A stretch of 64,000 nucleotides of DNA from Oopsacas minuta (taxonomy: Eukaryota; Animalia; Porifera): assembly GCA_024704765.1 (NCBI GenBank), contig JAKMXF010000066.1, positions 248,001 to 312,000 on the forward strand, read 5' to 3'. This document shows positions 24,601 to 32,075 of this stretch, piece by piece. Made by a program: the position numbers and the translations under genes. How positions within the stretch are numbered: position 1 is the first letter of the stretch; the number at the start of each line of letters is the position of its first letter. The notes beneath the pieces were generated by a model. It was not told the origin of the DNA. It did not search any database and saw nothing but the letters and a program-made list of their open reading frames with translations.

Positions 24601-25428
24601 GCATCTATAGACTGCCCATATATAATCTAGACGTCAATTTGATTATGTAGAAGAGATAAAATGTTAACCTTTCGTGTAAGGAGTGAAGGCAGTTGTATCA
24701 CTTATCCTAAATGAATTATATGAAATTAATTCTACTTTATATGCTCCACTATTCAATTCCACCATTCCCTCTACATTAGTAAACCTCACACGATCACCAG
24801 TTTGTAATCCATGTACCTCATGCTGCATAAGTGTAACTAGTCCTCTCTCATTTTGTGATACATACTCTATCATGAATTCCTCTTTCTCTTCATCATTCTT
24901 ATCAACAACTTCAAAAATATCACCAAAGTCATTAAAAACTGAAGCAAACACACCAAAAGTGTTAGCAGAAATAAATCGTACTGGAGGGGCTGCTCTGCGA
25001 CAAAAGTGATTAGCAGATTCCAACAATTCGAAGGATCGACAGTTGACAAAAATGACACATGTAAACCCTTCTAGAATAGATAACTCGTCTTTAATAACAG
25101 GAGATTGAACTCTGACCTTTACATACAGATTCAACTCAGCCAAACGTGGACATGTAATATCAGCTCGATATTTTCCGATATCACTCTCCCTCAAGAAAAA
25201 CTGAGTTCCAATGTCGGAAATGGTAACCAAGGTATCGTCACATAAAACTAATTCCTCAACGCCCGTGAGTACAATATTCTTAGCTATTTCAGCACCTAGA
25301 CCATCCAGACCATACAACAGTACTCTGGAATGAGCCAGTTTATTCATAGCATCATCTCCAAGGACATAACGTTGTCTATTGTAAAGGGAATCGTCAATTT
25401 GGATGTGTTTAGGGCAGATTGTAGCCAT
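21665..25428 (-). CDS. UBA6: Divergent UBA6-like ubiquitin-like activating enzyme E1 (5 exons)
   Basis: DDSLYNRQRYVLGD, EEFIRREDRYDLLRLCIG, VGCGAIGCEIMKN, GTKGHVQVIIP, and a C-terminal UFD region (WDRWEIRG). Exons at about 25428-24668, 24231-24029, 23972-23670, 23606-23192 and 22895-21665, joined by GT-AG introns. The best match recalled is UBA6; orthology versus paralogy is not established. Confidence 0.8.
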
Positions 25429-26238: not shown

Positions 26239-29200
26239 CACAGTGGTTTAAAATGGGAGTTAGTAAAGAATAGGTATTCTAGTACCAGATAGCCATATGC
26301 AATGTATTATTTGCGAATAGGTTATCGTATCCGAGGAATCGAATGGGGTAATCAAATTTCTTCTATGGCTTCTAGATTTCTGGATATGACGTCACATTTA
26401 AAAAATTATTTAATAAAACTCATAGAAATTTCCACTTCATAAGAAAAATCTCCTACTCTGTATATATACTATTACTCTGTATAGTATTTGGATAAGAATG
26501 TATAGATTTAACATTTTAATGAATCAATGAATTAATTATAAGTGAATCAACAATTTCGTCTATAGAAGAATCTAGTAATCTATTTTCGGTATTATCCCTA
26601 CAACACTTTGCTCTTTTTGTGTGGCCGTGTTCCCCACACCTTTCACAAACTAAACTTGAACGAAATTGATTCAATACAGAGTCACTTTCAGAGGCCAGTC
26701 TCACGAAAATGTCCATTGCATTATCTTCAAATGAAGACTTCCTTGCAAGATTCTCCCTATACTTTCTTAGTAACTTGTTGCATGCCTCGGATCCCTCTTC
26801 AGAGAAACTTTTCAGACCTCGCCCATGGTTGAACTCTTTCAAAATTTCTTCTGAGTGAGCTAATACCCTGGTAATGTTGGGGTAATGCTCACCCAAGGTA
26901 ATGAATCAACGATCAAGAGATATGTATCGGTGCATAGATCACCAAAGACCTCGGTGTTAATGATCCTGTCTGAATTGATTATTCGAAGAATAGCTGACAA
27001 GTGTGTATGTAGTTTTGAAAGTGTTTCTTTGTGTTCTGTTTCAACAACTGACAATACACACTCAATGTATTTCGAATCACAGGAAAATGCTCGACGAGCT
27101 ACACTACCAGTAGAGCTAGTACCTCCACTTGCATTCGGCTGATCTATCCTCATTCCTGTCTTCCCTTCAATCAGATTTCTGACAAATATCATCGAATTTT
27201 TATCGCCAAAGATGTCGGTGACCATGTACGTTTTCCACAATTCAAATGATAAATTAGTAGATTGAACCACCTGAAAATGCCAGTGTACGAGTGTAACGGA
27301 GATGCTGGAAGGATGTTTATTGTTGAGGTTGGTTCGTGCGTTATGTTACAACGTTGGTTTGAAGGAAGTGAGAAGAACGAATGGCTGTCTTCTATTTCAC
27401 CGAAAAGTTGAATTGCATCAGTAATGTACCTGTTGATAGGAAATCCCTGTATTATCAACTCACGATCACTGAGTTCCTTATGTGTTGCTGTACATAATTG
27501 ACAACTTGCCCCACCTGCCCAAGATAGAATTCCTGCCATTTTCCCATCAAGCATTGATCGAACAATGTCGACTCGTACTTGCTGATCAGGGCCAAGAGTA
27601 AATCCTTCACTTCTCATAAGATCAGTATCAGTATTGATTAGATCGTCCATAAATCGCTTGATATTAGCTTCGTTTTCTTTCGCAGCGAGGAGGAAAATCG
27701 GACGTTGAGCAAAAGGAGAATTGGGAGTGTTATTTTTCCAGAGTTCGCGACCGCTATTGCTTATTACCTTTACAGCTCTGAAACAGAATAAGATAAACGA
27801 CTTAGTATCTGTATTCGTGTTTGATTGATTATATACAGTGTGACTTCCAGAGCCATCTAGTCCGTCTGCTATCTGGAATTATAGGGGATAATCTTGAGCT
27901 GGAGGTGGCGGTAGCGTGGACATAAGCCTGCAAAAAGTATGGCGGACGTGATGGGCATATGGCATATATACACCAAGTGGAGTTTCAGGATTGGGGTACA
28001 TCTGAATATCCGACCGTAAATTATACTGTTTCTTTCTTCTACTACCCTATAGTATGCCGGGAAACGAATATCGCTAGATAGCAAGTGATGTCGGAGTTGT
28101 GTGTATTTCCTCCTGCCAATTTCTAGGAGATCTACAAGGAACACTGTCTTGGTAACATCGAGCTCTTTCTTCAACAATTTACCGAATTGACCCGAAAACT
28201 TGTCATAGACTACAGATTTTGAAACTTTAGCTATTTCTCGCTGTTTTGTTTGGTTCGATAGTAGTTGCAAGGCAAGTGCAGCTATCTTGATTTCTGAAGT
28301 ATTCTCAACGATTGAGAGTGCTTTGATAGATTCCAAGACATTTGAGAGTCGTGAGCGTTGTTGTTGCATCGTGAGATTGTCAATACTCTTCCTATGGTTT
28401 GCAGAGAGTGTGGATATGACTTCTTCATCATCTGAAGACAGCTCAACGGTATCATAAAAACGGTTCCTCTTCAACTCTGGTTCCATGGATATACCACAAT
28501 GCCACCAGTCTCCCTCTAAGCAATCTAGCGATTTCTTTGCCTTCCTGATCCTGCTTCTTACTCGGAGGAGCGTTGCTTCCAATTGTTTCCTTTCTTCGAA
28601 GTCCATTTGAAAGTTCTGCTCAAAGAAACTGAGTGTCGTCGAGATACAGTTGTTGTTGTCTTTCAAAATCTTCGCAAATTCAAGATGAGAGTTAGGGAAA
28701 GTTAGTTCTTGAGTCATTGATAAAAGCGTAGAAAACGGTTGATTATCAGCAAATTCAATTTGTTAATGTCATATTAATCATGTATTTATATATTACATTT
28801 ATTGGTAATTGGAATGCTGCAATAGAGTAGATAAATTTAGCATACAAATTGCATAGCAACAAAAAGGTGACAATGGAATTCGCTGAAATTTTTCATGTTG
28901 CGCACTGTTTCTGTGCTTATCATTTTAATATGTCTTTCTAGATATTATAATGCCATTTTGGAATTAATTTCTAAGTGGTGTTTTGTGGTGTTTTTTTTTG
29001 CGGCCATTTGGAAGTTCTTTTTCTAAAAATATTGTACCTCTAAAGTACCATTAATCAAATCAACTTTGAATCCAAATGTAGTAAAGATACACTGACGAAA
29101 ATGAGAAATCAGATTTAGCATAACTGAATTGTGTTGACGAAATAAAATAAATTTGATTCGGAGAATTCTGTGACGCTCTCAAGTAACCTTAAATTGGTGC

Positions 29201-29391
29201 TAATATTAGCATCACTGAAACCGCAAATAGAACTATTTTTTGATTGATTCTTTAAATTCATATTGTGAGAGCTATATGTATTCGATCGAATTGAAATTTG
29301 AAATTAACATTATTCAAACAAACAAGAACGAGTTTAAACCATTAAAAATGAAATCTATTTTTTGTCTATTCTTTGCATTCAAACCACTGTG
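26239..29391 (-). mobile_element. RAG1-like/Transib-superfamily DNA transposon with RSS-like bipartite termini
   Basis: Inverted ends CACAGTGGTTT at 26239-26249 and 29391-29381. Each is followed by AAAGAATAG (26265-26273 and 29374-29366). A single internal transposase gene; no 5-bp TSD. Confidence 0.85.
26516..28717 (-). pseudogene. RAG1-like/Transib DDE transposase, about 734 aa after repairing three -1 frameshifts and one nonsense codon
   Basis: Hand reconstruction: NBD-like RKSIDNLTMQQQRSRL; IADGLDGSGSH (D1); WKNNTPNSPFAQRPIFLLAAKEN; SMLDGKM (D2); CQLC; ITPTL(H)RVLAH; FSEEGSEACNKLLRKYRENLARK (E); C-terminal CERCGEHGH. Lesions at about 28020, 27879-27881 (TAA), about 27200 and about 26870. 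Confidence 0.9.
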
Positions 29392-29396
29392 TGTTT

Positions 29397-30040
29397 TAGG
29401 CACGTCGCCTCACGTCCCAGATAGTAGGTATACACAACGTTGTGTTGCATCTTAGTAATATAAACCTTAATTAAATTAATGTCATATTTATACTTAGAAT
29501 TAATGGGAGTAAGCAGCAGGCCAATCGGAATATACACGTGGAGACATAATCTACAAATACTTAAATGGCATTGCTGGAGTGACATATTGGGCGCATTATG
29601 GTGTGTATGTAGGTAATAACTACGTAATTCATTTTACACAGGATGATAATGGTACAGGTGTGGTAAAGAAGGACAGCCTCGAAGCATTTGCTAATGGGAA
29701 AGATGTACATTTTTACAGTCGTTCAAGCAGTAGAACTGCCGATAAAGCCGAATCTATTTACAATGGAGGTGGCAGAGATTGGAAAACATATGATTTGTTG
29801 ACCAGAAATTGCGGACATTTTGTAGCGGAGTGCGCCAAATGATTAATATAGTCTAATCAAACAGCAACGACGACAGATTTAACTAGTTATTGTAGAGTAA
29901 TGATTAGATAGTATGTATTTCTAGCAGTTCTTTTTTCCTCTTGTACCTTGATTATATGAAACTACTAAACTAATTATTCAATATAATTATATACATTGAG
30001 TTTTAGAGGGTTCAATCAACAAGCTACTAATTAAATAGCC
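29397..30040 (+). repeat. Tandem segmental duplication unit (copy 1) of 30810-31445
   Basis: Near-identical from TAGGCACGTCGCCTCACGTCCC to TAATTAAATAGCC in both copies. Confidence 0.9.
29503..29842 (+). pseudogene. LRAT/NlpC-P60-domain gene copy 1, with a 7-bp insertion after the ATG (frameshift)
   Basis: ATGGG-AGTAAGC-AGCAGGCC versus ATGGGAGCAGGCC in copy 2. The downstream frame keeps YWAHYGVYVG..VIHF and NCGHFVAECAK. Confidence 0.75.
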
Positions 30041-30915
30041 AATAAGCGACTTCATGGAAATTATATTTTTGGGTTCTACCATCCTTCATGAAATACTCAA
30101 CATTTCCAGAATTCCTACAAAATCACAATCACGTAATTATAAATGTACAGTATTTCCCTGAATAACCGAGCGTTATTCTTTTCGTGTAATTTTTTTACAA
30201 TTTTTGAAAATACAAATGGTTTTGTGAAACCAATTATCCTAATTTGTTGGATAGTCAAATGAGACATAAATTAACAGTCTTCTAATGATAAATTATATTC
30301 ACAAGGCTTGGAGCCTCTTCTAGCCCCCGGCGTATTTCCCTGAATAAGCATTCAGGAAAATACGATCATTACAATAAAATAATTTATGATAGACAATTTA
30401 GTGAACTGAATGGATTCCAAGGATCAGTTACAAATAATTCCTGAAATAATGAATACGCCCTTGAGGGAAATAAGATCCAACTCTAAAGAAGGACAATATA
30501 TTAGGCTAACTACCAGAATACTACATATAAAGGAAATTACAGCCACTGTCAGTATAACTACGTATACTAGTAAAAATGAATTCATTCATCTAGGCTGTAT
30601 TTCCGTCCGGTCTATGACATTGCATCAAACCACCTTGACTTAAACACATATATGTACCAATCATTTATTGTAACACTTGATTAATAAGAGGGCAATTCCG
30701 AGTTTAAATCGTTAATTCTTACAAAAATTGCAGGAAAATAATTACTGAGAAGACAATTAGGTCCCTGGTAGACCCATTTCCCCTAATTTATGTACTAAGC
30801 AGGATTTTCTAGGCACGTCGCCTCACGTCCCAGATAGTAGGTATGCACAACGGTGTGTTACATCTTAGTAATATAAACCTTAATTAAATTAATGTCATAT
30901 TTATACTTAGAATTA

Positions 30916-31275
30916 ATGGGAGCAGGCCAATCGGAATATACACGTGGAGACATAATCTACAAATACTTAAATGGCATTGCTGGAGTGACATATTGGAAGC
31001 ATAAGGGTGTGTATTTAGGTGATAATTATGTAATTCATTTTACACAGGATGATAATGGTACAGGTGTGGTAAAGAAGGACAGCCTCGAAGCATTTGCTAA
31101 TGGGAAAGATGTACATTTTTACAGTCGTTCAAGCAGTAGAACTGCCGATAAAGCCGAATCTATTTACAATGGAGGTGGCAGAGATTGGAAAACATATGAT
31201 TTGTTGACCAGAAATTGCGGACATTTTGTAACGAGTGCGCCAAATGATGAATATAGTCTAATCAAACAGCAATGA
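30916..31275 (+). CDS. LRAT/PLAAT-like (permuted NlpC/P60) protein copy 2, with a MGAGQS myristoylation-like start
   Basis: RGDII..YWKHKGVYLGDNYVIHF..Y.LLTRNCGHF, so His-His-Cys is present. A 1-bp deletion near the end changes the C-terminus relative to copies 1 and 3. Confidence 0.8.
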   Translation: MGAGQSEYTRGDIIYKYLNGIAGVTYWKHKGVYLGDNYVIHFTQDDNGTGVVKKDSLEAFANGKDVHFYSRSSSRTADKAESIYNGGGRDWKTYDLLTRNCGHFVTSAPNDEYSLIKQQ

Positions 31276-32075
31276 CGACAGACTAAACTAGTTATTGTGG
31301 AATACTGATTATATAGTATGTATTTCTAGCAGTTCTTTTTTCCTCTTGTACCTTGATTATATGAAACTACTAAACTAATTATTCAATATAATTATATACA
31401 TTGAGTTTTAGAGGGTTCAATCAACAAGCTACTAATTAAATAGCCCTGTTGCATGAGATATTGACCCCCATATAATAATGACCCCCCCCCCCTCTATAAA
31501 GGAACCATGGATGCTCAATGGGGTCATTTTGGCATAGTAGAACTGACATAATTTATCATAGTCATTTGAATCCAGTAAATTGAATGTTGAATTCGGTTCC
31601 GCGGCATTTTTATATCCCTTATTATTGGGAATACTTGTTATCAAATTAACAACGAAATATACACTGAACTTTCGGTGCTTCTTGTGGTTTAATGAACAAT
31701 TTATTTTGTAGATTTAATATGATAATGTCATCCAGTGATGACAATAACTTGATGTGATAAGAAGGGGGTCAATATCTCACGAAGATTAGAGTAGAATAAT
31801 GACCCCTTTGAGCATCCATGGTTCCTTTAAAGAGGGGGGCTCATTATTACTGGGGGTCAATATCTCATGCAACAGGGCAATTTAATTAGTAGCTTGTCGA
31901 TTGAACCGTCTAAAACTCAATGAATGTAATTACATTTAATAAATAGTTTAGTAGTTTCATATAATCAAGATACAAGAGGAAAAAAGAACTTTTTAAGAAA
32001 TACTTAGTATCTAATCATTATTCTACAATAAATAGTTTAGTCTGTCGTCGTTGCTGTTTGATTAGACTATATTAA
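31245..32075. repeat. Long inverted repeat (arms about 31245-31528 and 31798-32075) joining convergent LRAT copies 2 and 3
   Basis: For example GCCCTGTTGCATGAGATATTGACCCCC and GGAACCATGGATGCTCAATGGGGTCATT are mirrored at 31798-31878, and the 3' flanks of both genes mirror each other. Confidence 0.85.

Follow-up and report, generated by a model that had tools for sequence, protein, structure and literature searches.

A decayed Transib transposon in the hexactinellid sponge Oopsacas minuta with asymmetric ends and a predicted RAG1-like nonamer-binding fold

The genome of the hexactinellid sponge Oopsacas minuta contains a transposon whose single gene joins a Transib-type catalytic core to a predicted counterpart of the RAG1 nonamer-binding domain (NBD). 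The element occupies positions 26239–29391, on the minus strand, of a 64,000-nucleotide stretch (assembly GCA_024704765.1, contig JAKMXF010000066.1, positions 248,001–312,000; hereafter, the window), and we assign a probability of roughly 0.88 to our reading of it as a decayed, autonomous-type Transib with the published architecture of Subgroup I Transibs. A first examination of the sequence (the original prediction) had described a mosaic of RAG1-like (RAG1L) and Transib features and suggested an intermediate lineage that carries RAG1L only. The architecture is real but does not mark a new RAG1L-only lineage, because the same combination of features defines the Subgroup I Transibs; the mosaic has already been published, and what is new here is the sponge host. 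We put forward only tentatively that this is the first documented Transib lineage of sponges, recently active (about 2% divergence and perfect target-site duplications) and characterized by an NBD fold, heptamer–9-mer ends with 10- and 19-bp spacers and an extra N-terminal domain resembling a helix-turn-helix (HTH).

The terminal inverted repeats (TIRs) of Transibs are organized as heptamer, spacer and nonamer, and Transib transposases keep the motifs that delimit the nonamer-binding region of RAG1 at its termini (Kapitonov & Jurka 2005, PMC1131882). Tao et al. 2022 (PMC9435367), working from a genome set dated April 2020, described Subgroup I Transibs with asymmetric TIRs, a CTT1 tail and a retained α11-12 region, named them ‘intermediates’ between Transib and RAG1L, and reported an NBD equivalent in both Transib subgroups. 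Martin et al. 2023 (PMC10462144) list asymmetric TIRs, a CCGHC tail and an NBD among the features already known from Transibs, and Transib TIRs with 12/23 asymmetry have been reviewed (Yakovenko 2021). We found no report in the literature of a Transib in sponges and no paper pairing Transib with Hexactinellida; Porifera go unmentioned in the RAG and Transib papers checked and are absent from the taxa of Tao et al. 2022 and its supplement contents.

Asymmetric ends and a single gene

The window copy is 3,153 bp long and carries inverted CACAGTGGTTT at both termini, an extent that is matched by end-to-end collinearity with a sister copy, L002. In gene orientation, the 5′ TIR (29366–29391, minus strand) consists of the heptamer CACAGTG (29385–29391), a 10-bp spacer and the 9-mer AAAGAATAG (29366–29374), and the 3′ TIR (26239–26273, plus strand) of the same heptamer (26239–26245), a 19-bp spacer and again AAAGAATAG (26265–26273). 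This layout, with a 9-mer that reads nGGAAATAG or AAAGAATAG, is common to the window copy and three further elements (L001, L003 and L004), giving four elements with the TIR asymmetry that is typical of Subgroup I Transibs. The window copy and L001–L004 begin and end with CACAGTG, with the exception of the 5′ heptamer of L002, which reads CACAGTA; the termini are therefore of the CAC(A/T)GTG type, resembling a recombination signal sequence (RSS), that is expected of Transibs. No DNA similarity to the window element can be detected in L004, yet its TIRs are laid out identically, and this retention of position without conservation of the spacer sequence argues that the heptamer–spacer–9-mer arrangement is functional. 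The two spacers differ by about one helical turn.

Perfect 5-bp target-site duplications, another Transib trait, flank L001 (TAAAG), L002 (CTATG) and L003 (AACTA); none was found at L004.

Inside the window element, a 2.2-kb reading frame is accompanied by 674 bp of sequence without an open reading frame (ORF) upstream and 277 bp downstream. As the original prediction had stated, there is neither an ORF nor space for a RAG2-like gene (kelch, with or without PHD) between the TIRs of this element, and the other copies, at about 3.0–3.4 kb (3,418 bp in L001, 3,226 bp in L003 and 2,998 bp in L004), are likewise one-gene elements. The absence of RAG2L is a defining trait of Transibs. The convergently oriented RAG2L gene that would be expected of a RAGL transposon was not found in the element.

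The transposase gene is a pseudogene

The gene was read by three-frame translation of the minus strand, by tblastn with the related proteins P0184 and P0182, and by DNA alignment to L002. The transposase pseudogene (26516–28717, minus strand; about 734 codons) consists of four collinear ORF pieces in three frames (28717–28020, 28019–27201, 27201–26872 and 26881–26516). Compared with L002, it has suffered three 1-bp deletions, at approximately 28020, 27201 and 26870 (frameshifts 1, 2 and 3), the last of which falls at the first ZnH2 histidine codon, intact in L002 (TPTLHRVLAH); an in-frame TAA stop (27879–27881) stands where L002 has CAA (Gln). The protein of about 734 residues that had been assembled from four ORFs with three −1 repairs and one stop is thus upheld, with its lesions placed by tblastn with P0184 and by the L002 alignment. 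One further lesion had escaped notice: in SWAGGAS, Trp (27519–27521) replaces a nearly invariant Gly. With three 1-bp deletions, one nonsense codon, the Gly-to-Trp substitution and a lost target-site duplication, the window copy is dead and unable to yield a protein. The annotated gene of the locus, GenBank model LOD99_14715 (P0002), which bears the name ‘V(D)J recombination-activating protein’, removes frameshift 1 by means of a false intron and is cut short at frameshift 2.

All of the Transib-style catalytic motifs named in the original prediction were located on the minus strand: DGLDGSG (27846–27866), MLDGK (27540–27554) and SEEGSEACNK (26774–26803). The second Asp of DGLDGSG (27855–27857) is equivalent to RAG1 D600 and the Asp of MLDGK (27546–27548) to RAG1 D708, occupying the invariant columns D285 and D388 in both of our alignments (A1 and A2), and the Glu of SEEGSEACNK (26786–26788), equivalent to RAG1 E962, occupies the invariant column E642. 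The four RAG1-type zinc ligands that had been described are likewise accounted for: the ZnC2 ligands CQLC (27492–27503) fall in the invariant columns C403 and C406, and HRVLAH, of which RVLAH is read at 26855–26869, loses its first His only to frameshift 3. The element therefore has what is expected of a Transib, a single gene with RAG1-core homology and a conserved DDE triad.

The catalytic core is that of a Transib

A family profile was built from 23 full-length relatives (alignment A1) and searched against the Protein Data Bank (PDB). HzTransib of Helicoverpa zea ranked first (E = 5e-76, 260 bits), followed by amphioxus BbRAG1L (E = 1e-51, 180 bits) and RAG1 (E of about 5e-36, 127 bits), similarities well outside what chance would produce. 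The AlphaFold2 (AF2) model of P0184 (pLDDT 87.5) also matched HzTransib best (6pqx; Z = 33.0, root mean squared deviation (rmsd) 2.8 Å, 24% identity), with RAG1 at a Z of about 31 and BbRAG1L at 27.4. The individual pieces of the window gene give a concordant result: the sole PDB match of piece 2 is HzTransib (E = 4e-5), and piece 4 ranks HzTransib above BbRAG1L and BbRAG1L above RAG1. When the four pieces were scanned against Pfam, the sole match was that of the last piece to the RAG1 model, below threshold, and the intact P0184 falls short of the cut-off of that model too. Because profile and structural matches both place HzTransib first, we assign the core to Transib and not to RAG1L; the closer kinship to RAG1L or RAG1 that a RAGL element should display was not found.

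HzTransib (PDB 6pqn and 6pqx) is thus the best match to the core, and the two have in common the DDE triad, the CxxC/HxxxxH zinc site, heptamer ends and a 5-bp duplication. The solved HzTransib chain of 497 residues begins at the DDBD, such that its alignment starts at profile position 172 and P0184 model residue 182 and the first approximately 170 profile positions, containing the N-terminal domain and the NBD, have no counterpart in it. HzTransib also lacks an α11-12-like insert of about 49 positions (profile 409–457), and its tail is of the CTT2 type (Tao et al.), as opposed to CTT1 in the sponge element.

Those same profile positions align to RAG1, and in the window the equivalent of RAG1 α11–α12 lies at 27291–27485 (minus strand), a region whose retention is typical of Subgroup I Transibs. 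Over the aligned span, the P0184 model covers 488 of 507 residues against RAG1 and 466 of 543 against HzTransib. In RAG1, the α11-12 region is the RAG2-binding region. The C-terminal zinc knuckle CERCGEHGHTKRAKCC (26600–26647, minus strand) is of the CTT1/CTT* type CX2CX3GHX4-5C, a motif kept across A1 including its distant members, and the pattern in the window tail, CX2CX3GHX5C, supplies the tail expected of Subgroup I.

A predicted NBD fold precedes the core

The original prediction had aligned a segment upstream of the core with the RAG1 NBD by eye, and structure prediction supports that alignment. We folded the first 234 residues of the window protein with AF2 and compared the model with known structures using Foldseek and VIA-align. 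Residues 103–172 (28202–28411, minus strand) match residues 389–456 of RAG1 in the NBD–DNA complex 3gna with Z = 6.6 over 67 of 68 residues, the best unrelated match scoring 3.8 (VIA-align); Foldseek gives a TM-score of 0.76 and an rmsd of 1.9 Å against the same structure, and its best 17 matches are all NBD-containing RAG1 chains. The family profile is collinear with RAG1 from profile position 76 through the NBD and matches the 3gna chain separately (E = 0.009), and residues 106–686 of the P0184 model align to RAG1 391–1005. A single-sequence PDB search with the N-terminal piece returned nothing; the link to the NBD came from the profile and the structure prediction. On the strength of these models, a predicted NBD-like fold is present in the sponge Transib protein.

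In the predicted structure, this helical fold lies directly N-terminal of the DDBD, for which the DDBD-like segment proposed earlier supplies the helices (residues ~183–234; 28016–28171, minus strand): residues 106–233 of the window model align to RAG1 391–511, covering NBD and DDBD together.

Ahead of the NBD-like fold, a three-helix domain (residues ~9–75; 28493–28693, minus strand) is modelled by AF2 with a pLDDT of about 82–84, is conserved in A1 and is followed by a disordered linker. Residues 1–100 have no Pfam or PDB match, in keeping with the earlier description of an unrecognized N-terminal domain; the structural matches are weak, all with Z below 4 (3.5–3.8), to HTH domains of Mos1/SETMAR and to homeodomains, and the modelled domain is probably HTH-like. 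An N-terminal non-core region of the RAG1L type (zinc fingers, RING/ZDD) was not found.

Relatives and recent mobility

L002 lies on O. minuta contig JAKMXF010000177.1 of GCA_024704765.1, the assembly of the sister loci. It is collinear with the window copy over the whole element, the two being 97.9% and 95.6% identical in nucleotide sequence, and its lesions are independent of those in the window. Given a near-identical sister that is differently damaged and bears the perfect CTATG duplication, we conclude that the family was mobile recently and that its copies have been decaying independently. The sister copy is itself split by a nested insertion of 2.7 kb (L002:5741–8461), which contains, on the opposite strand, a 489-residue ORF without a Pfam match.

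Intact ORFs of 723–725 residues exist in assemblies of the European Nucleotide Archive (ENA), among them the closest intact relatives, P0184 (724 residues; L001, ERZ20067936) and P0186 (723 residues; L003, ERZ25069837); with intact ORFs, perfect TIRs and 5-bp duplications, the L001 and L003 elements look potentially active, as judged from sequence. More distant families, at about 40% protein identity, are also present in O. minuta (P0234, P0238 and L004), and a homology search with the distant member P0149 returned only ENA/Logan proteins and one beetle protein. Approximately 29 annotated O. minuta proteins match the N-terminal piece or P0002. Many of these models look like similar fragments, and some fuse Transib N termini with a ‘P element transposase’ annotation (P0004).

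Genomic context

The transposon is flanked by an exon of ubiquitin-activating enzyme E1 on one side and by LRAT-domain genes on the other. The former is a 254-residue exon-like ORF (24664–25428, minus strand) with ThiF and E1_FCCH domains, about 800 bp from the 3′ end of the transposon. On the latter side, a segmental duplication (29394–30040 versus 30806–31445, and also 32385–31876, inverted) is 95.5% identical and contains an LRAT-domain exon.

Comparison with Transib, RAGL and RAG

The sponge element resembles Subgroup I Transibs such as Hydra Transib-9_HM and those of Mnemiopsis leidyi in its single gene, asymmetric CACAGTG TIRs, CTT1 tail, NBD equivalent and 5-bp target-site duplications, a likeness judged by features; it differs in its host phylum, Porifera (Hexactinellida), in its 10/19-bp spacers and in having HRK for GRP. 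With BbRAG1L of the amphioxus ProtoRAG and other RAGL elements it has in common the core fold (at the Z score given above), an NBD*-like region and a TIR-clamping, CCGHC-type tail, whereas RAGL elements carry RAG2L in convergent orientation and have a long N-terminal region with zinc fingers, both lacking here, and are less similar to the sponge element than is HzTransib. The vertebrate RAG1 core is collinear with the sponge protein from NBD (389–456) to CTD and has the same DDE residues and zinc ligands, and the 12/23 RSSs of RAG also combine a heptamer with an A-rich 9-mer and two spacers that differ by approximately one helical turn. The sponge protein nevertheless has only 16–17% identity to RAG1, no RAG2 partner, acidic tail or GRPR motif, and a spacing of 10/19; it belongs to a mobile element, whereas RAG1 is a host recombinase.

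Several observations weigh against the assignment to Subgroup I Transibs. The assignment draws on three shared features and a ranking of scores. The minor-groove motif GRPR/K of the NBD is missing, with NHRKS standing opposite RAG1 GRPRQ and HRK opposite RPR, although the distant family members P0165 and P0178 do have GRP. For some insect Transibs a spacing of 12/23 is on record, from which 10/19 departs. What the NBD-like domain, the tail and the N-terminal domain may do is ascribed by analogy. Finally, the window copy lacks a target-site duplication, its flanks reading AAACA and TATTG in gene orientation. For this last point, the flank offers an explanation: the duplicated sequence starts at 29394, three bases past the end of the transposon, and homology ends at the transposon boundary, so that a later rearrangement of the flank, at the edge of the segmental duplication, probably accounts for the missing repeat.

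The lineage suggested by the original prediction, RAG1L-only and placed between Transib and RAGL, would be nearer to RAG1L than to ordinary Transibs. In its favour, the NBD fold, the α11-12-like region and the CTT*-type tail are all missing from HzTransib, and the label ‘intermediates’ was applied by Tao et al. to Subgroup I Transibs themselves. We nonetheless regard it as unlikely, as the core ranks HzTransib above BbRAG1L and RAG1 in sequence and in structure, the zinc-finger or RING region of RAG1L is missing from the N terminus, and the RAG1-like features are ancestral in Transibs (PMC9435367, PMC10462144) and hence shared primitive characters. The concept, moreover, has already been published: the Subgroup I Transibs are a described family of this same architecture, the very finding that had been named in advance as counting against the proposal. 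Still less probable is the secondary loss of RAG2L from a RAGL transposon, a route raised as a possible origin of Transibs by Martin et al. 2020, and one with which the retained counterpart of the RAG2-binding region of RAG1 would agree. All four element copies examined are of about 3.0–3.4 kb with one gene between the TIRs, the family profile favours HzTransib over RAG1L, and bacterial and Subgroup I Transibs keep α11-12 without any RAG2L.

The existence of gene model P0002 could also be taken to mean that a transposase-derived gene (LOD99_14715) has been domesticated by the host. That model, however, is drawn around the first two frameshifts as described above, and a sequence that is broken by three frameshifts and one stop codon, keeps its TIRs intact and has near-identical paralogues with lesions of their own is hard to reconcile with host function; given the lesions and the intact TIRs, we rejected domestication, the least probable of the readings considered. 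The assignment that best fits the evidence remains a decayed Subgroup I-type Transib.

A proposed mechanism

Building on what was observed directly (homology, predicted folds, the structure of the TIRs, the target-site duplications of sister copies and the mutations), we propose how an intact element might work, with the pairing of domains to TIRs and the nick–hairpin chemistry modelled on relatives. Such an element would encode one transposase of about 725–735 residues, ordered as the N-terminal three-helix domain, NBD fold, DDBD, PreR, RNase-H DDE core, ZnC2/ZnH2 with the α11-12-like insert, and CTT1 tail. By analogy with the solved complexes of HzTransib, BbRAGL and RAG, a transposase dimer would bring a 10-bp end and a 19-bp end together in a synapse, and the DDE site may nick at the heptamer CACAGTG and form hairpins on the flanks. 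An NBD dimer could read both 9-mers across the asymmetry of the spacers, a difference that would be analogous to the 12/23 rule, and the CTT1 knuckle would clamp the heptamer-proximal part of the TIR. Integration would then yield the 5-bp target-site duplication.

Implications

The element adds Porifera as a host phylum to the Transibs that are most like the ancestor of RAG1, those that combine an NBD, a CCHC tail, the α11-12 region and asymmetric ends, and it documents a TIR layout that is kept across sponge elements otherwise devoid of DNA similarity. The picture of RAG origins is unchanged, as the published model already assumes an ancestral Transib with these features. For the annotation of O. 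minuta, LOD99_14715 and many similar models named ‘V(D)J recombination-activating protein’ are transposon pseudogenes and not host homologues of RAG1. If the tentative reading of a first, recently active Transib lineage of sponges is correct, the module of NBD, nonamer and asymmetric spacers, together with CTT1, would already have been present in Transibs of the earliest-branching animals, and the sponge elements would offer a tractable, RAG2-free system for studying how spacer asymmetry is read.

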